The position numbers were made by a program, and so were the translations under genes. Under the pieces are notes generated by a model. It was given only the letters and a program-made list of their open reading frames with translations. It was not told the origin of the DNA and made no database searches. DNA of 62,471 nucleotides, counting the filler, from Polymyxa betae A26-41 (lineage: Eukaryota > Protista > Endomyxa: Phytomyxea), in the NCBI GenBank assembly GCA_003693705.1. It is 6 parts of 6 records of this genome, joined end to end, with 100 filler letters (N's around TTAATTAATTAA, not from the genome) between each part and the next. Parts side by side here need not be neighbours in the genome. Positions count along the whole stretch, not along the records: positions 18,443 to 31,054 come from RBZT01000103.1; 5 more parts are not named here. One strand, written 5' to 3'. Shown piece by piece: positions 18,443 through 31,054 of this stretch (positions are counted from its first letter, which is position 1; each line of letters opens with the position of its first letter).

Positions 18443-18659
18443 GAGATGAGAAACGTATGAATTTTGGAGTTGATCGGAATGGTTGCGTGGAGGCCGCTCC
18501 TCGCCATTCATAGTAGGGAGACGAGGGGACCCGCGCAGTCCGTGACAGTTAGGGCTCTTCCCCTATAGGAATCGTCAGCAGTGGCGCAGCCCTCTGCGCA
18601 GCCCCTCAGGAAGGGCCAGTACGACTGCCTGGTGGTCGGCTGGGCGGCTGCGAGTACTG

Positions 18660-20340
18660 TCATGCTCAATGGGCATGACAGAAGTCCGGACTTGACCAAC
18701 ATCGCTCTTGCCATTGTCACCAATTTTCCGCCGATCACCTCCGACAGTCCGTTCTGGAACGGCATTTTCGTGTCCGAGAACTCCTGCCGCACACCCATTT
18801 CGTAGAGTTCCTTTCGTAGATTCTCGCTGGTGAATTTGCCTCATTGGTCAGCGCGAAACACCTCCACCCGATTGTTGCCGGAGCTCATTCTCTCCAGACG
18901 TTCCAGAATTGCAGTGGTGTGCAGCTCCTGTTCTCCTTTCCTGCTAAGATTCACCGTCACTGCAAATCCGCTTGCATGATCTGCGTAAACAGCAAAACAG
19001 TTCTTGCCATTATAGGATACTTTCGGCATCGACTGAAGGTCAGATCCGATCACCTGTAGTGGTCGCAGTTCACGAGTCCGCTGCTTCGGAATTTTGGCAA
19101 CGAGCAGGTTCGCTTCGACGCAGATCCTGCACTTGCATTTCGCCTCCCGCTCCTCGTCGATGACGATCCGCAAACCATCCACGGACTTTTTCGACTCCAT
19201 CGCCGCCAGCGTCTGCTCACAGAGATGACCCAGCCTGGAATGCGCCAGAACCATCGAAACTGTGCCTGGGGGTTGTCCTTGGTTTTGATCTGAGCTGAGG
19301 AGGGCCAAGGCCCCTCCTCTCAGCAAAAATCCTGCTCCCGAGAAAGGTCCGCATAAAGCAGACCCTGCCTCAGGGATGCAGTCAGCAGAACCGTACCGTC
19401 GGCGCCGATAATCTTCGACGATCGCGTAGTCTCCCTGTGCTCAGCTCCGGCACCCAGTTTCGTAAGCGCCGCCCTCACGGCAAACAAATTGACGACCGCG
19501 TCCGGAGCGTAGTTCACGTTTTTCATTGTGACAAGCTGCCCGTTAGCGGATTTCAATACAACATCACCCTTACCGTGAATCTCTATGCGATCACCGCCAA
19601 CGCCTCCGATAGACGGCCTCTTATCCTTGTCGAACATCTGGAGTCCGCCCTTGAAATGATCAGTATGGGTTGAGACGTGACCACAGGTCGCGGCTCCGTC
19701 CAACACCCAGTCGCGCAATCCCTTCCGCGGAGTTCCGTTGTCGCTGGACAGCGCCATTGACAGCATAGCCACATTTGCGCGGCCTCTGTCATTCTGCGCG
19801 TCCTTCTTCTTACTTCGACAATCGGCAGCTCGGTGGCCGACCTTTCCGCAGTCAAAGCAACGCCCTTTGAACGCTCCCCTACGGCGTCCGCGGCCCGCTG
19901 TCATCGCCAGTCCGGCGTCTGAGTCCGTGACATCACTAGTCACCGCCATCCGTCGTAAGAGTGAGATGACGTCATCGCGAACAGTGCTTGAGGTCAACTC
20001 CTTCGATGGTCCCGACAGTCGTCGATACCGGACCTGCTCCATGTCGTTTGGCAGGGACATGCACATGAGGACGCCCATCACGACGTCAGGCAGGGCGCGG
20101 TTCTCGTCAATGTCTTTCAGGCGCAGGGTCAGGTCGACCATGGCCTCAAAATGCTTCTTTGCCTCTGCAACCGACGCGTTACTGCGCAGGCGCATGCCGA
20201 ACAATTCAATAAGAAGCGTCGTTATGTCCTGACTCGTTTTCCCCGCGTACTCTGCTGATAAGGCCGCCCAAACCCCGGCTGGATCGTTAGCGAATGCCTT
20301 GATTAAAGTCAGCTGACTCAAATCGATGTTCCGCGTTATC
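18660..20340 (-). mobile_element. Ty1/copia fragment: gag-protease ORF, then integrase in the -1 frame
   Basis: Gag knuckle CFDCGKVGHRAADC, protease WVLDGAAT, GAG-pre-integrase HSRLGH..CRIC, integrase GSDL, FRADQ, PFQNGLSE...MARAML. Confidence 0.93.
19277..19332 (-). promoter_or_regulatory. -1 programmed ribosomal frameshift signal (slippery heptamer + H-type pseudoknot)
   Basis: G GAT TTT in the gag frame, 6-nt spacer containing the TGA stop. S1 GAGGAGGG/CCCTCCTC, S2 CCTTGG/CCAAGG. The downstream ORF is exactly -1. Confidence 0.75.
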
Positions 20341-20507
20341 GCCAGACTCCTTCTAGCAAGTTGCTGTATTTACAACAGGACAAAAAGAAAAAAACTCAAA
20401 AAATTGCTTTGTTAAATAGAGTATTGTATGCAAATCAGGGATCAACATTATGATATTAAAATTTTCTTCTAATGGATTCAGGTTCGTGTATGATCTCGTC
20501 GTAATCT

Positions 20508-20756
20508 GTTGAGTAACGGATCTCTGCTATCTATGATGGCAGAAGACGACAGGGACGCGGTTGAGCCTGCTCGAGGTTAACGCAGTACGGCCCGGCTGCA
20601 ACAATTCCGGGTGCTTGGGAGACCTGTCGAACCTGATACTAAAGAGCTGTTTGAATCTTTATTATCTTTCGCTGTTCTGTTACCGTATTCGCTTCGTCGT
20701 CGAGGATTCTATCAGTCAATCGATCAGTATGACCGTATGCGTGTATACGCTTGACA
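20508..20756 (-). repeat. probable 5' LTR of the copia fragment
   Basis: TGTCAAG...CTCAACA termini, AATAAA on the minus strand, located upstream of gag. PBS not clearly recognisable. Confidence 0.45.
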
Positions 20757-22156
20757 TATACATAGGGATTTCATTTCTCAGCGTTTTTGTTTTGTTTCAA
20801 ATGATTGTTCGCACTCCGTTCGAAACAACCACGCATCATACACAACTACCTACGAAACCGGCATAATCAGAAAATTCTTCAACTTTTTGACTGATTGCTT
20901 GGTCTGGATGAGCCTAGTTTTTGTTAGATGGCCTTGGTTTACAAGTTGCTACTATACCTGCGAGATATGAGCCTGAGCTCTTGCAACGTTTAAATAAAAC
21001 GTTTTCGCAAAAAGGGCACGAAATATTGCCATTCTCAAATTCGCAACCGTGACCATAAGAGCTGAAGGTGGACGACGATGGAACCGTTTGTCGACCCGCG
21101 CTGTCTTTGGTAGTTTCGAATTTTTTTGTAGAAGTGAGCACTGAAACTTTGCTTATTTTAAGATTTCGCCGGTTTGGTGATAAAAGATATTCTCAATCAG
21201 ATGCGACATTTTGTCTCGGGGTAAATTGGACCTGTCCTCCAAAACCTTAACACAGGTATCACAGGGCAAAGTTCAACATCGTAGATCAGTAAACTTGAAT
21301 TGTTCTTTATTCAACTATAAAAATATCTGGGATTACGAATACATTGCAGTCACAGGAGTAACCTCCTCCAGGGGCACAGCCTTGACAAACTAGATCTACA
21401 AAACTAATATCCGTATTCAAGGCCGGCGTCTCCGACCCTGATCGTGATCGTGTGCTGTACCATGTGACTGTGTACCTGGTCGCGTGGCCCCGTTGTCCTT
21501 TGTCTATCTTCATTACGTTTCTGCAATAAACTGGTGTTCCTTACCGCTGATCTTTTCGCTTGAGCGTTAATCATCTCATATTGCTTTTCTGGCTTTGTTC
21601 TGTAGACGTACTGCCAACTTTAATTGCGGTGTCCAGAATTTAATGGGCTTATGTTTTATTGTTTATCGTAGGAAATACACTGTTTCAGAATTTCGTTCAT
21701 TTGATTTAGTGTTACTTCAGCAAATTGTAATTCGTTCAATGATTTTTAAATCCTTTTTTCTTCAAACAACCCCAAAAATATGCTCTTTCCGGAAGTGGAT
21801 AAAGGAAATGACAACGCCGTGTCGATCGCAAAGAAATTATAGTTCGGAAAGCCTTCTTGTGTTGTGATGGAATCCATCGGCGTCTCGACAGCGGGATTCT
21901 CATCGACCGACGCGTTAGCAATCAGCTCGTCAACAGTATCAGGGGACTCTTACGCAAGCAAATTGTCCAGGTACGACTGGACATTTTGTTTCGGGGCGTC
22001 CTTTAGCCGTCCATGATTTAATCTCTTCTGTAGGAATCGTTGCGTGTGCTGTCCGACCGTCCCCGGAGAGCAAGTGCCTCCGGAGTTTTTGTAAACCAGC
22101 AAATTCTCGTCCGTCATATCCACAGACATAGACGGTCGTGTGTTTTTTAGGCATCG

Positions 22157-22900
22157 TTAGAGCGAAATAGGAGGTGTTAGAGTAGAGTGATCCATAGGCA
22201 TGGAGACAGTGATGGGCTTCAAGGGGTGATCACCCTGACGCACAATTGTATATCGCTGACAAGGATTAGGAGTGCAGAGCTTGAGATGCTGTTCGACGTC
22301 TCGAAGCATTGGATGGCCAAGGTTCGCCGACTCGCCCTTCTGGATGAGTCGCGCTACCGTTGCGATGACGCCGAAATGACCTTGTAAATGGGCCTGCTCG
22401 ATAACGCTAGCACGCTTGCGATTCTGGGACTGTAGGGACGAAGACGATCGCAGTCTCCTGCTGATGCAGCGTCTCAGCTGCATAAACTAAGGCTGTACGT
22501 GTCAATGCCGGTAACAGTCTGGATAAGGCATCAGATAGAATGTTCAAGATCCCTGGCCTGTGGATGATTTCAAAGTCGTGAGACAGGACGGCATTGATCC
22601 AGTTCGCAAGCGGGGGAGACACGTCTTTCTCGACAACCCAGCGTTGAACGTATTCTTCACAAGTCCTTATGGACGCCAATTCTAGGAGCGGCAGTATTAA
22701 AGACGTCTCCAGCTTGTTCAAGGGCGCTGTACAATGCAAAGCCATCATAGAAAGCTGGTTGCCCGTCCCTCATTGCCTTCGACGCGAAACCAGACTTCCT
22801 TGAGCAGTAATCGTTCCAAATTAATCAGTCTCGAGCGAAGGTGCTCTTCGTCCGGTGCAGCTACAATCCTGTGCAGAAAGACGTTCCCCTAGCCATCGCC
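22157..22900 (-). mobile_element. Ty3/gypsy pol relic (RNase H end + integrase HHCC finger)
   Basis: FEIIHRPGILNILSDALSR; AHLQGHFG...C....CQR; LKPI. Confidence 0.75.
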
Positions 22901-23387
22901 TGAATTAGAGTTGCCAGAGTATCTGCATCAGTTCTGGATTGGAATTCTTGGGGGATGAGGTGATTCTTTTTCTCAATGGATTGAATTCCTGACTTTCAAC
23001 AGATTCCAAGTCCCGACGAAACTCCGTGAGCCAGCCAGGGCGCAGCCAGCTGCTACCTACGCCTGGCGGATAGAAAATTATTATAACCAATCTTCCTTTC
23101 AAAGGGGCAAAACATTGCAGATTCAATTACACGCAACAAAATCAATTCTCCCAAGAATCACGTTGTACAACCTAAAAAATGCTAAAAACTGGTATATAAT
23201 CAGCAGCATGATGACTGATGAGAGGTAGCTGGTACTTATCAAATAAAAAATAAGAACTCTTTATTTAACAAAATTATAAAAAATTTCTTAATTTTGGTTT
23301 TACATACTAAACTAAATTTCCTTCCAATATGCAGATTACCAGGTACGTGAGCGCCAACCAAACTTTTGGTGTCGCAAATGCCGAGTC

Positions 23388-23830
23388 TTAGGGGGCGCAT
23401 TCGTGCAGCTCTATAAGAAAACAAACCGGTCAGTCGCCATGCTGGCCCTCCCCCGGCAGCTGATGGACGTACCGCGTTCCGATTCGCGCATCAAACGTCG
23501 AATTTGTTTGTTGGGGCAGCCAGCGCAGATGCAGGATTCGCCACACGGGCAGGGACGTTCGGAATCGCCGGCCTTGGCCACGTGACGCTCGACGGAGCGG
23601 GCGGGCGGTACGACCGCGGAGCGATGATGGTCCGGATCGCAACGGAAATCCAGCACGTCTGGGCCCAGATCCAGGACGGACTCGGCCGGCGTCACTTTAC
23701 AGACGCACGCGTCACCGACTGTTGGCGATTTAGCGGGACCCCGCTAGGGCAGGAGGAGGCCGTACTGGCCCCCCATCCCGAAGCAGCACCTACCGCAGCA
23801 GCCACAGACGAGTTCCTCGGAATCGGTCAT
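23388..23830 (-). CDS. small Cys-rich, metallothionein-like protein (3 exons)
   Basis: Phase-consistent GT-AG splicing gives MTDSEELVCGCC/VGDACVCK...RPCPCGESCICAGCPNKQ...ER/ELHECAP-stop. Confidence 0.6.
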
Positions 23831-24241
23831 GGAGGAGGCAGCGAGACAGTTTGGAGGCGCCTCTGAGGATGTTCATGGATTTTAGACGAGCAGGGTTTTA
23901 GGATTTTTGTCAGGGTTGCGCCCCAGTTGGGCTCCCATCACCTATTTAATCAATCCACAGACTTGTGATTTGATATCTTAACTGGAAATATTCACTTAAC
24001 AACATCTCTCCCAGAGGTCTCCATCGCTTAACCATAAACAAACGCTTGCTTCACACCGGGTAGCCTTCTGGGTTCATTTCTGTTGATTTCAAGAGAAAAT
24101 CATTTGTGAGCACAACTCAGACAGCCTTCTCTGTAGACTCTGTCATCTAATGATCTTCTTTGGCGTCGAAAACCACAATAAGTTTCGTAAACTGACCCAG
24201 CAGATCCGCTTAGAACGAAGATCTCAGCAGCGTGTTTATTA

Positions 24242-26469
<2,228 letters not shown>

Positions 26470-26532
26470 CGAATGAACGACGAAGAAGTACGCGAGGGCC
26501 GATCGAGATTTTTTCGAAGAATCTTGTTTATT

Positions 26533-29407
26533 TTAGGCCACGTAGCGGAAGGCGTTCTGATTCTTATCATCACGCTCGATGTATTCGCGGTCCACCAGGC
26601 TGCTGATGCGTTTGTGGATGTCTTCGACGGGAACTGGGAAGCCGCACTGATCCAAGCTATAGCGAATCAGCTCGGTCTGGCTGCAGGATTTCACGGCTTT
26701 CATGTGACGGACGAGAATGGCATCGATCTGATACATTCGATCAGACATAACCTGGGCAGTGACTTCTTCGGTTTCCGTCTTGGCTTCGATCGGTCGAGCG
26801 AAGGCTGAGATGCGGCGTGAAGGATGGCTGAAACTTCGATTAACTTGAAATTCGTCAATATCCACGACCTGCACGAAAACATTGAATTTTGTTATGAAAA
26901 GACCAAGATGACCTACAGGTCCTTTCTTCCTCTTCTTTAGCACTCTCAGTTTTTCTTTGCAGAAAGAACCTAGAGCGTGTTTTAGCTGGTCGTCTGGGAG
27001 ACCTGTCCTGTCCTTCAACGCAGTGTACGACAGAATATCTGGTGCATCGTTAAAGGCGAGAAGCACCAAAGCCTGATAGGGCGAGACGATCAGTTCCTTC
27101 TTGCCCTGTGGAAAATGCCCCGCGATAATAGCATTCGAAACATGATAGACCCAACTTAGTTTCCGGCCGCTATGGCGAGCGACGTAAAATCGTTCGAAGT
27201 CGCTTTGATACTGTAGGATAGGTTGTGGAATGATCAACGGCAAGGATTGTGGCTGATTGAGAGATTGTGGCCAGTGAGATGTAGTCAACACTGTTGGGCA
27301 GAACTCAAACGGTTCCGAGGGCAAGCCAGGGTATTGGGCCACGATCTCTTGCGATAGTTCGATATCCTTGAACATACCTTCCAGCTTGGTGGTAAATAAT
27401 GCTCCGCATTCGGTGCGAAGCTTGCTGAATAAAGGTGTCAAATAGTAAAATATCGACAACCAATGGCATGACCTGATCATATTGATTTCGGCAGCCTGGC
27501 TGCAGGATTCATTCAGTAGCAGTCGCTGCGCCAAGGCAGCTTTATAGAATGCCTCGAACATGTCTTTACCATGGACGAACTTAAAAATTACCATGCAGCG
27601 ACTCAACCTCGCTTCGAGCTCATGTTCCTGTAACACAGAATAAAAACCATAAGAAAAGAAAAAAGACCAAAGAAAACATGATAGAGCAGACATGAATCTT
27701 CATGGAACCTCTAAGCAGCCAGTTAATATGCTTTGAGAGTAGTTCGGCAGGAAGATTTCCGCGAGACTTGAAAACGGCCTCGAAGGCATCCTTGCAAGAA
27801 TGCTGCAGATCAACGGTCATCTCACCCTGGGTAAAGTCAGAGAGCAAAAACTAAAGCGATTTCCAGCATTGCAATACCGCTTGATGAACAACAGTATCAA
27901 TATTGTCCTTAAATTGCCCGACTCTGTCGATAACGTCGCCTTCTCCGATTGTAACAGTGTCGCCTTTCAAGATTTCCATGCTGCAATGCATGACGTAGTC
28001 ATGAAGCGCCAGCTTTATGCGATCTTGGCCCTTAGCACGAGATGCGAGCTGGAAGAACAAAGCCAGTGAAGATAGTGTAGAGGGCAATGCTGACATTAGC
28101 GCAGAGAAGCCGTTTTGAATCAAAGTCTAATGAAATAATTAGAAAGTGTTTGAAAATGTTTGATCCCTGAACGTTTGGAGAAAAAGGCAGACTAAGACAA
28201 TGAAACGGTAAAAAGTCTTTAAATTCACCCAAACATCCCCAACAACTGCAAGAAGAAAGAATTCAGAGAGCATTGCGCAAAACAATTATGCAAAATGAAA
28301 CAGGTAAAGCAAAGGTAAAGCTGACAGGTAGGTGCTGGGCTACCAGCTTTTGTTCAACAGAGGATATGGTGTGCGGGAGGGTATGTGCTTGCAGATATGC
28401 CTGGACTCGTGAAGTTTCTTGTTCCAAACGTGATCGCACATGCTCGAGGTAATTAGCAACGTTCATATCAGGAGCAGAACACATTGCAATGCCTTCTTGT
28501 TCATAGAACCTAGAGATGAAGCCGCTCAATATCCAGGATTTAAAAGTTTGAAAGTTTGAGTAGAAATGGCATTCGAAAAGCAGATTGGGAAAGAAAGAAA
28601 TTTCCAAGCAGTAGAATGATCATCAGACATAGGGCAAAAAGCAAAAAACACAAAGCTGAAACGTTACTCTTTTGTTTCCTTCAGAAACTCGGTCTCGATC
28701 ACTTCATATAAATTCAATTCGCAGGTCATATCGACAATATCTCGAACCAGACTTGAACTTTCATCCATATGATCGATGCCTTCGCGCTCTTCTCGGAATC
28801 GATCCATCAACGCGCAAATCATTCGGGGAAAAGCAGCGCCGCTCATCAGCTCGTTGCGAAAGATCTCTTTCCCCATGGTAGCAATCGCACCTGGCTTCAA
28901 TATGACCCTGTCCAGATACATAAAAATGCTGATAATCGTCGTCATCTGCCGACAGTGTGTCGTCCAGACAACATGGACCGCCTCAATCTGATCCCGATCG
29001 ATCGTCTCATGCAGAGCCTGAAGCTCTTCCTTACAATGCTTTTGATAATGCTCTCTCATCTGCGAATATGTCTCTTGACCTTGCTCTACATAGCAACTTT
29101 AACACAACAGCCCGAGCTTAAGCATCAACTCACTTAGCACGCATAGGTTCTGAACAGTCCTAAACAGACGTTCGCGGCCCTGGATGGCCCCAGTCGACGA
29201 CGCCGTGATAGCGATGAGCGCCTCTTGCAGCATCTCTTTAGCCGCCTTCTCATACTGAGAGGTATCAGGGGCGACATAGTCTCTAGGTAGAATGATGCGA
29301 CACTGGTGTTCAATGGGCTGATTGGGAGGCTGGGCTGGAGCCTCTGAGTCTTCATGAGCCATGGTCGATACGTTACCGCCTGTGCTCAGCTTTCGCTTCC
29401 GGTGCAT
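26533..29407 (-). CDS. CUL4: cullin, most like cullin-4 (multi-exon)
   Basis: IFMYLDR, FKFVHGKDMFEAFYK, KLRTECG..FTTKLEGMFKDIELS, GRKLSW, IDAILVRHMK (neddylation Lys), LVDREYIERD...FRYVA. Confidence 0.9.
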
Positions 29408-29465
29408 CGTCGTCACTCTTGGTGACAATGAGAACCTGCATCAAAGAGGCCGCGCTGTGTTCATC

Positions 29466-29625
29466 TCGCACTTTTTTGGTTCGCACTTTACTCTGGGCTC
29501 GAAAAACGTGTTCGCACTTTATTCTGGGTTCAAATGGAGAGACGTGTTCGCACTTTATTCAGGGTTCAAATGGAGAAACGTGTCCCCGCACTTTACTCTG
29601 GGATCAAATTGAGAAACATGATCGC
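29466..29625. repeat. ~36-bp tandem repeat (about 4 copies) upstream of the cullin
   Basis: Unit TTCGCACTTTATTCTGGGTTCAAATGGAGAAACGTG with variants; no unique spacers. Confidence 0.85.
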
Positions 29626-29869
29626 ATTTTTTGTGCAGATATCAACGCCTGTGCTCAGCAGCTTTCACTTCAGTTTTGAAACAATCAATCGTCATCACTG
29701 TTGGCGGCAAATGCAAACATCCATGTTGTTTGCAGAATTCACCCTCGTACCTTTGTGGATTCGCGATCAAGCGATAAAGAGCTCGCACTTTAAAACCAAC
29801 GTCGAGGTTCTCGATGCCAAGACCGGCACCTGCGATCGAGCAATCGGGCCAACTTTCTGTATCTTCTCC

Positions 29870-30400
29870 AGGATGGCTAGCAAACATTCTTCGGAGCTCG
29901 CACGAGTCTGCCTTGATCGTGCCCCAAAGAATGCAACCCTGACTTCGCCTGATGTACAGAAAAACGTGTCGGCAATGGCGTCGGAGGTCATGAAAAATAT
30001 TGTTCGAGAGCTCCGCAATAACTTCTTCTGCATTATGATTGACGAAACTCGAGACGAATCAGTCAAAGGCCAGATGTTATTGGTCGGCTCTGCCTGGTGA
30101 GAGAAGGGTTAAATTCAAAATAGATTCTTTGATATGGCTCTCCGACATTCGTTCCGAATCTTTACGGGAAGCCACTGTCACAGCCTGTTCATCGCCACGG
30201 CTTCACTATCAGTCATGTACGAAGGTCAGGGCTACCAATGGGCTCGGCGAGCTCAACGGCCTCCAGCCCATCTGCGCTTACATCTACTGCTCTGCTCATC
30301 GGCTGCAGCTGGCTCTGATGTTAATCGCTAAATCTCAAGTCAAGGTTTGTTTGTTCTTGAATGATGGAAATTCGATCTGTGTGGCCCCTGCGGCATGTTG
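29870..30400 (+). mobile_element. hAT transposase relic (DUF4371/ZMYM-like)
   Basis: APKNATLTSPDVQ, FCIMIDETRDESVKGQM, GQGY, YIYCSAHRLQLAL. Confidence 0.8.
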
Positions 30401-30710
30401 ACCGATAACGACAAACTCCGAGACGCTCAGGCAGCACAACTCCGTCATGACAACAATAATCACGAATGCACCCAGCGACTCCGTCCCTGCTGGCTTCGGC
30501 AAGACGCCCAGAACATTACTGTCACGAACGAGCCTCATTAACGCTGTTGAGGATGCGTCAGCATCCGNNNNNNNNNNNNNNNNNNNNNNNNNNNNNNNNN
30601 NNNNNNNNNNNNNNNNNNNNNNNNNNNNNNNNNNNNNNNNNNNNNNNNNNNNNNNNNNNNNNNNNNNNNNNNNNNNNNNNNNNNNNNNNNNNNNNNNNNN
30701 NNNNNNNNNN

Positions 30711-31054
30711 ATGCAACCAGAGGCAATCCAAGCAAACAGCTTAATCACAAAATCATTCAAAGGTGCCAAGCTGAACGACGAGAATTATACGATGTGGGCG
30801 TTCCAAATGAAGGTTCACCTGAAATCCATACGGCTATGGCACATCGTCGAGACAAGGCCATCTCAAAGTCAACATGAAAATGATGCCTGCTTTGCGGAAA
30901 TTGTCAACAACATCGAGGCGGATCAAGTTATGACTGTCATCGAGTGCAGAACTCCGGCCGACGCATGGAATGCACTAGAGCGTTCACACAGAGCCCGAAC
31001 ATTCTCACACGTGCAATTTATGAAGCAGGACTTTATTAACAAAACATTTAATGT
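30711..31054 (+). mobile_element. Ty1/copia gag N-terminus
   Basis: KLNDENYTMWAFQMKVHLKSIRLWHIV, TPADAWNALE. Bounded by gaps. Confidence 0.85.

Follow-up and report, generated by a model that had tools for sequence, protein, structure and literature searches.

A candidate −1 ribosomal frameshift signal with a conserved H-type pseudoknot between protease and integrase in a clade of Ty1/copia elements

In Rous sarcoma virus (RSV) the protease (PR) is encoded in the gag frame and the ribosome shifts after it, and mouse mammary tumor virus (MMTV) and simian retrovirus 1 (SRV-1) have pseudoknots at their gag-pro frameshift sites. More widely, many animal long terminal repeat (LTR) elements, like retroviruses, use −1 frameshifting and a pseudoknot as a matter of course, and of the 51 animal LTR elements covered by a survey, 28 have pol in −1 (PMC5009743). 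Several strategies have been described for Ty1/copia elements: a +1 frameshift in Ty1, a stop codon that has a pseudoknot on its 3' side in Tca2, splicing in copia, EVD and BARE1, one open reading frame (ORF) with degradation of Pol in Ty5, and odd +1 layouts in Sireviruses (PMC5580714; PMC2194720; PMC2829016). Our search of the full-text literature, which covers it incompletely, returned no description of ribosomal frameshifting of the programmed −1 type (−1 PRF) at the junction of protease and integrase (IN) in a copia element. Here we analyze such a junction in a Ty1/copia element of Polymyxa betae A26-41 (GCA_003693705.1). The window, as we call the whole stretch of 62,471 nucleotides that was analyzed, joins six parts of this genome, and the element lies on the minus strand of the piece taken from RBZT01000103.1 (positions 18,443 to 31,054; all coordinates count along the window). 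A slippery heptamer and a predicted H-type pseudoknot follow the protease there, and the organization of this locus and its relatives makes it very probable that a distinct Ty1/copia clade uses the cassette, placed between protease and integrase, as a programmed −1 ribosomal frameshift signal.

The heptamer, G_GAU_UUU, had been described as functional in some plant RNA viruses by an earlier reading of the window made without database searches (hereafter the sequence-only reading). The published work agrees: pea enation mosaic virus 2 (PEMV2), an umbravirus, uses it in an experimentally studied −1 site, G_GAU_UUU_UGG_UAG, whose stop codon matters for frameshift efficiency, and the same heptamer has been reported in other RNA viruses (PMC5009743; PMC4737148).

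In the window, the minus strand reads CAG GAT TTT TGC TGA and then enters the structure. The slippery heptamer G_GAU_UUU (19332-19326) is in phase with the zero-frame codons GAU and UUU of the ORF at 19320..20321, and the 6-nt spacer UGCUGA (19325-19320) ends in the stop codon of that ORF (UGA, 19322-19320), one codon past the heptamer. The 5' arm of the 8-bp stem S1, GAGGAGGG (19319-19312), is followed by loop L1, a single G (19311), and by the 5' arm of the 6-bp stem S2, CCUUGG (CCTTGG in DNA; 19310-19305), which lies within the S1 hairpin loop. The S1 3' arm, CCCTCCTC / CCCUCCUC (19304-19297), pairs with the first arm; after it come the 14 nt of L3 (19296-19283), A-rich toward the 3' end and containing an AUC(C)AAAC motif that recurs in relatives, and the S2 3' arm CCAAGG (19282-19277), which pairs with CCUUGG. 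The predicted fold thus comprises S1 of 8 bp, L1 of 1 nt, S2 of 6 bp, L2 of 0 nt and L3 of 14 nt, and the integrase frame, entered from 19326, is exactly −1 relative to ORF1. All of this was confirmed to the base: heptamer, spacer, helix and loop lengths and coordinates are exactly those of the sequence-only reading, and its assignments of phase and frame were borne out by ORF and domain mapping. We searched for H-type structures under fixed constraints (spacer 4-9 nt, S1 5-10 bp, S2 4-8 bp formed from the S1 loop, L3 4-25 nt). Summed over its two helices, the pseudoknot of the element reached −21.6 kcal/mol; none of 300 dinucleotide shuffles and none of 396 further windows taken from this locus did as well.

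The copy that carries this cassette is an inactivated fragment which merely preserves the signal, a fossil. What remains of ORF1 (19320..20321, minus strand) encodes 333 amino acids with the Pfam copia gag domain (Retrotran_gag_2), a CCHC knuckle (zf-CCHC) and the protease beta-barrel (Pol_BBD, protease region), and ends QDFC-UGA. It lacks the N-terminal 70-85 gag codons, although homology to relatives extends to 20357; in tblastn searches with those relatives, gag matched from residue ~70-85 on (20357-19323) and ORF2 over residues ~10-230 (19284 to ~18640). The ORF2 remnant in the −1 frame (18681..19326, minus strand) holds the PR-IN linker, the HHCC zinc finger (gag_pre-integrs) and part of the integrase core. 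That an integrase ORF follows in the −1 frame is correct as to frame, but the ORF is short and broken in this copy. It has an in-frame stop at 18843-18841, so that it reads FRADQ-stop-GKFTS where relatives read FRADQGGE[F/Y]TS, and Lys replaces the catalytic Glu of the D,D35E triad (codon 18837-18835). A further sample of this organism yielded a contig (run X1, depth ~2x single copy) with sense codons at both lesion positions (18835-18843), and the lesions are thus private to the window copy or strain.

The fragment measures 1.7 kb and is cut at both ends, the integrase at ~18681, and no long repeats were found within the piece; the contigs of the relatives reach no further than the internal region. 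At 18680/18681 the contigs from all four public runs part, and there the copia fragment is terminated by a very high-copy repeat that is not part of the element (18443..18680, no strand assigned; depth 100-3000x single copy). This repeat reaches its depth of 100-3000x in two host samples, occurs also in runs labelled as two other organisms, and has no Rfam match. In a second sample of the organism, read contigs are identical to the window over 19306-19481, and no indel was seen in the T run in any aligned host read contig. A host sister subfamily of ~9 copies (~9x single-copy depth), ~87% identical and collinear with window positions 19079-19742, crosses the site without net length change and keeps the same frame relation.

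The protease region has one further peculiarity. The usual retropepsin active site is D-[S/T]-G; the window ORF1 carries LDGAATCGH (residues 205-215, about 19690-19720, minus strand), and a D-[G/S/N]-A-x-T-C-G-H motif is kept throughout the family (alignment A1). Such conservation indicates that the unusual motif is presumably functional.

A word search with ORF1 returned ten alignable Gag-PR homologues of 41-79% identity, nine of which end 0-2 residues after the same Q-D/Y-F (QDF or QYF; alignment A1). At the DNA level, the set comprises nine distinct elements, namely the window copy, L001, L003, L004, L007, L008, L009, L010 and L013; L002 is another contig with the ORF1 protein of L001, and L005 and L006 share that of L004. 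ORF2, encoding integrase and reverse transcriptase (RT), lies in the −1 frame in all nine. It is complete in L003 (1087 aa) and L004 (1090 aa), and in L001, L002, L005 and L008 it stays open for 573-963 aa, up to the end of the contig. All copies run into a stop in the +1 frame after 2-128 codons. The open frames of ORF1 and ORF2 overlap by 16-742 nt. The heptamer lies within both of the shortest overlaps, those of L007 (16 nt) and L008 (28 nt), so that the frame change must occur at this heptamer, and the intact elements, judged from these frames, depend on it. In the relatives, the domains found in the window copy are followed by rve, SH3_retrovirus and RVT_2, and the order of the domains that were scored, gag, protease, integrase and RT, fits Ty1/copia (Pseudoviridae).

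These relatives also bear on whether the frame break is merely an accidental 1-nt deletion in a dead copy, with heptamer and pseudoknot there by coincidence. The window copy is clearly dead, cut at both ends and carrying the stop and the Glu to Lys change, and one homologue, the protein P0004, alone among the relatives reads through the site, as QDF-LLRGGALALL, the exact product predicted for a −1 shift. However, the same break, heptamer and structure recur in eight other diverged elements, two of them with a complete ORF2, and P0004 is itself broken: it is a partial ORF (ENA ERZ27252091, a 2087-nt contig) that lacks the gag N-terminus and stops early in the integrase. Its continuity probably stems from decay of this copy, with one T too many in the run, a six-T state deduced from the protein alone. 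A scan of metagenome contigs with the Gag-PR alignment recovered only a duplicate of L010, and a locus of Plasmodiophora brassicae (L012) proved to be a rearranged gag remnant from which the site is absent. An accidental deletion is thus extremely improbable, and the proposal of the sequence-only reading that the frameshift is programmed rather than mutational gains support from the nine elements, two of them with complete IN-RT ORFs. A continuous ORF, which that reading had named as the evidence that would overturn it if found in other copies, emerged only in P0004; the nine distinct copies keep two frames, the heptamer and a covarying pseudoknot.

The heptamer follows the consensus G[G/U]AUUU[U/C] in all nine elements, with the first G and the AUUU core invariant. 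It is GGAUUUU in five (the window copy, L001, L007, L010 and L013), GGAUUUC in L004 and L008, GUAUUUC in L003 and GUAUUUU in L009. The P-site codon always ends in U, though C would be synonymous. The A-site U_UUY is conserved in the correct phase in 9/9; the P-site part is GGA or GUA and not XXX. The P-site codon varies between GAU and UAU, so that only the A-site slip is strictly conserved. The zero-frame stop lies one codon past the heptamer, or two codons in L010.

Downstream of the heptamer, the constrained search found a pseudoknot in 8/8 elements; the spacer measures 4-6 nt, and the energies of the two helices add up to between −17.4 and −24.7 kcal/mol. As controls for each element, 300 dinucleotide shuffles gave 0-4 equally good structures and 216-649 native windows gave 0-1. 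The ninth element, L013, has the same structure. Seven of the nine members share one H-type plan, and L010 and L009 deviate from it; L1 (0-2 nt) and L3 (14-16 nt) are nearly constant in length in seven. The 5' arm of S1 is a purine run of 7-9 nt in most members, and the S1 of L010 (CUGACGA/UCGUCAG) is not polypurine. With regard to L3, its 3' half carries an AUC(C)AAAC-like motif in 7/9 elements, and its length is 14 nt in five. Conservation of the motif could reflect loop-helix contacts or the encoded HPNQG peptide.

The sequence-only reading had proposed conservation and stem covariation across family copies as a check, and the heptamer and pseudoknot were retained in all nine diverged elements with changes on both sides of S1 and S2 pairs. 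Column-wise pair counting was restricted to five gapless sequences in register (alignment A3), and L004, L009 and L010, which fall out of structural register in an eight-sequence MAFFT alignment (A2), were handled by the per-sequence constrained search. In the five sequences, 94.3% of cells are paired and 5 pairs have both partners changed; the observed values for pairing, double changes or covariation were not reached in any of 500 shuffles, and sliding the 3' partners by 1-3 columns lowered pairing to 34-67%. In S1, L001 has a G-C to C-G swap at one position, and L013 differs on both sides at three positions in the same register. S2 takes the forms CCUUGG/CCAAGG, CUUUGG/CCAAAG (L008), an extended GCCUUGGC/GCCAAGGC (L003), GCUGG/CCAGC (L004), GCCUCG/CGAGGC (L010) and UGAUG/CAUCA (L009). 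As judged from these comparisons, support for S2 is good in the core clade and lower in L009 and L010.

The frameshift could also be programmed with the S1 hairpin as its only stimulator and with S2 fortuitous or a by-product of coding. By itself S2 is a modest helix. When S1 is held fixed, an equally good S2 arises in 0.1-15% of downstream shuffles per sequence, least convincingly in L009 and L010; in the core clade 5/6 of its pairs are invariant, with little covariation, and in L010 an alternative inner hairpin competes with it. Nevertheless, S2 is present in 9/9 elements despite their differing loop sequences, double changes keep it paired in L008, L004 and L010, and the lengths of L1 and L3 hardly vary in seven members. 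A signal consisting of S1 alone is therefore unlikely, and a pseudoknot remains the stimulator that we favor.

The mechanism we propose for the programmed −1 frameshift is as follows. ORF1 would encode Gag-PR and ORF2, in the −1 frame, IN, RT and RNase H (IN-RT-RH). A ribosome with GAU in the P site and UUU or UUC in the A site would be stalled by the H-type pseudoknot 4-6 nt downstream, whereupon tRNA-Phe could re-pair perfectly on U_UUY; re-pairing of the P-site tRNA would be partial in moving from GAU to GGA and poor from UAU to GUA. Of the ribosomes, a minority would read on into the integrase through ...Q-D-F-L-L-R-G-G..., and the others would set Gag-PR free on stopping one codon further on, at the base of the pseudoknot. 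The outcome would be a high ratio of Gag-PR to Gag-PR-IN-RT. We infer the slippage, its efficiency and the ratio of products from features that can be read directly in the sequences, namely the frame layout, the conserved heptamer, its spacing, the structure and its covariation. That GUAUUUY variants occur, and that a stop is conserved one codon downstream, suggests a slippage that would proceed mainly via the A-site tRNA-Phe and a termination context that may be part of the signal.

The two-ORF layout could also be genuine without any slip of the ribosome. ORF2 might be reached by reinitiation, internal entry, splicing or transcriptional slippage, with the structure serving in packaging or dimerization or as a central polypurine tract for plus-strand priming. 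As some reinitiation systems do, ORF1 has its stop directly at the structure; the purine run in the S1 5' arm resembles a polypurine tract in most members, and re-pairing in the P site is poor in the GUAUUUY members. However, no AUG is conserved ahead of the HHCC zinc finger of the integrase in ORF2, and in the −1 frame of L003 no Met occurs before one within the HHCC domain. The U run of 3-5 nt is too short for efficient slippage by the polymerase, and the 16-nt overlap of L007 leaves no room for an intron. The stem of L010 is not polypurine, and the 3' arms covary. Furthermore, the 4-6 nt from the in-phase U_UUY to a stable pseudoknot match the geometry that tandem or A-site slippage requires, by analogy with established −1 PRF. 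We regard these routes together as quite improbable, less so than an accidental deletion and more so than a signal made of S1 alone, and programmed −1 frameshifting as the explanation to be preferred.

Apart from the uninterrupted P0004, several observations weigh against this interpretation. The P-site portion of the heptamer is non-canonical, the GUAUUUY variants would allow almost no re-pairing there, and we know of no precedent for GUAUUUY as a slippery site. A plain nested minimum free energy (MFE) fold of 81 nt in the window is unexceptional (z = −0.37), in a model that cannot represent pseudoknots and against purine/pyrimidine-rich shuffles that also fold well. The two members that diverge most have a weak S2, at −2.7 kcal/mol in L009 and with a shuffle p of ~0.15 in L010. 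Polypurine and polypyrimidine arms make pairing of S1 in multiple registers easy, which is a caveat for counting by columns, and part of the conservation of S1 may come from the GGALA peptide that it encodes. Finally, the comparison comprises nine DNA copies, several of them closely related.

A search with ORF2 of L003 returned close relatives (38-54% identity, 925-1079 aa) that contain IN and RVT_2 and have no gag or protease domains. Relatives at or below 32% identity are single gag-PR-IN-RT polyproteins of 1112-1542 aa, except for one IN-RT protein of 663 aa. Since the close relatives lack gag and protease domains and the distant ones are almost all single polyproteins, the two-ORF layout marks a clade. 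One member can be tied to a known host. The Plasmodiophora brassicae protein PBRA_002079 (P0145, 956 aa) is 100% identical to residues 132-1087 of L004 ORF2 (L004:1527-4787), and L004 is thus an intact P. brassicae element. The annotated protein starts at an internal Met, and the upstream 131 codons of ORF2 and the Gag-PR ORF lie outside the gene model. The other relatives come from public metagenome or sequencing-run assemblies; similar layouts had been suggested for algal copia elements, and nothing in the relatives found supports an algal origin. We think it likely that this clade, of P. brassicae and eukaryotes sampled in metagenomes, uses genuine −1 PRF with a conserved H-type pseudoknot, at the PR/IN junction and with Gag-PR as the bulk product, and it would be the first such clade known in Pseudoviridae. 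For annotation, the signal would let such ORF pairs be recorded as one Gag-PR-IN-RT product and not as "broken" elements.

The remainder of the piece holds a protein-kinase ORF (25741-26469, minus strand), a minus-strand, intron-containing cullin-4 gene of two or more exons (26536-27693 and 28667-29059; best database match 42% identity) and a hAT-type DUF4371 ORF (29534-30097, plus strand), which adjoins imperfect 36-nt direct repeats (29470-29610). A second copia gag (30447-31054, plus strand) is cut by the edge of the piece; it was considered as a member of the same family and rejected, as it has no similarity to P0003. Rfam at gathering thresholds identified nothing in the piece. With the hAT-like ORF of this piece may be mentioned the hAT transposase genes (Dimer_Tnp_hAT) that lie a few kb from copia copies at two loci unrelated to each other (L013:5161-7119, L012:9078-9907), a proximity that may be chance clustering of transposons.

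Copia-type elements are generally credited with one ORF, or with +1 shifting, readthrough or splicing as the means of producing excess Gag. If the proposed signal is real, it adds retrovirus-style −1 frameshifting to the strategies of copia elements, at an unusual place, after the protease, and its compact, covariation-supported pseudoknot is directly testable in a reporter. With PEMV2, the window cassette shares an identical heptamer in the same phase and a zero-frame stop one codon after it. PEMV2 differs in being an RNA virus that expresses its RNA polymerase in this way, with three hairpins described near the recoding site (PMC4737148). The copia clade, in contrast, consists of LTR retrotransposons with a compact H-type pseudoknot predicted 4-6 nt downstream, and some of its members have GUAUUUY or C at position 7.

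Compared with retroviruses and Ty3-gypsy elements, the cassette has in common a heptamer with a downstream pseudoknot that would set the ratio of structural to enzymatic products. As in RSV, the protease would be made with Gag and the shift would come after it, and the short L1 and long A-rich L3 recall retroviral pseudoknots. The differences are that the copia order PR-IN-RT-RH places the shift at PR/IN, that the heptamer is not of the form XXXYYYZ, and that the sequences are unrelated. The clade belongs to the same superfamily as the described Ty1/copia elements and, like them, has to make more Gag than Pol, and in Tca2, too, a pseudoknot adjoins the gag stop. However, the strategies of those elements operate either where gag meets PR or on the RNA, and a −1 slip is not among them, whereas the clade described here would shift by −1 at PR/IN, on a slippery site followed by a pseudoknot.

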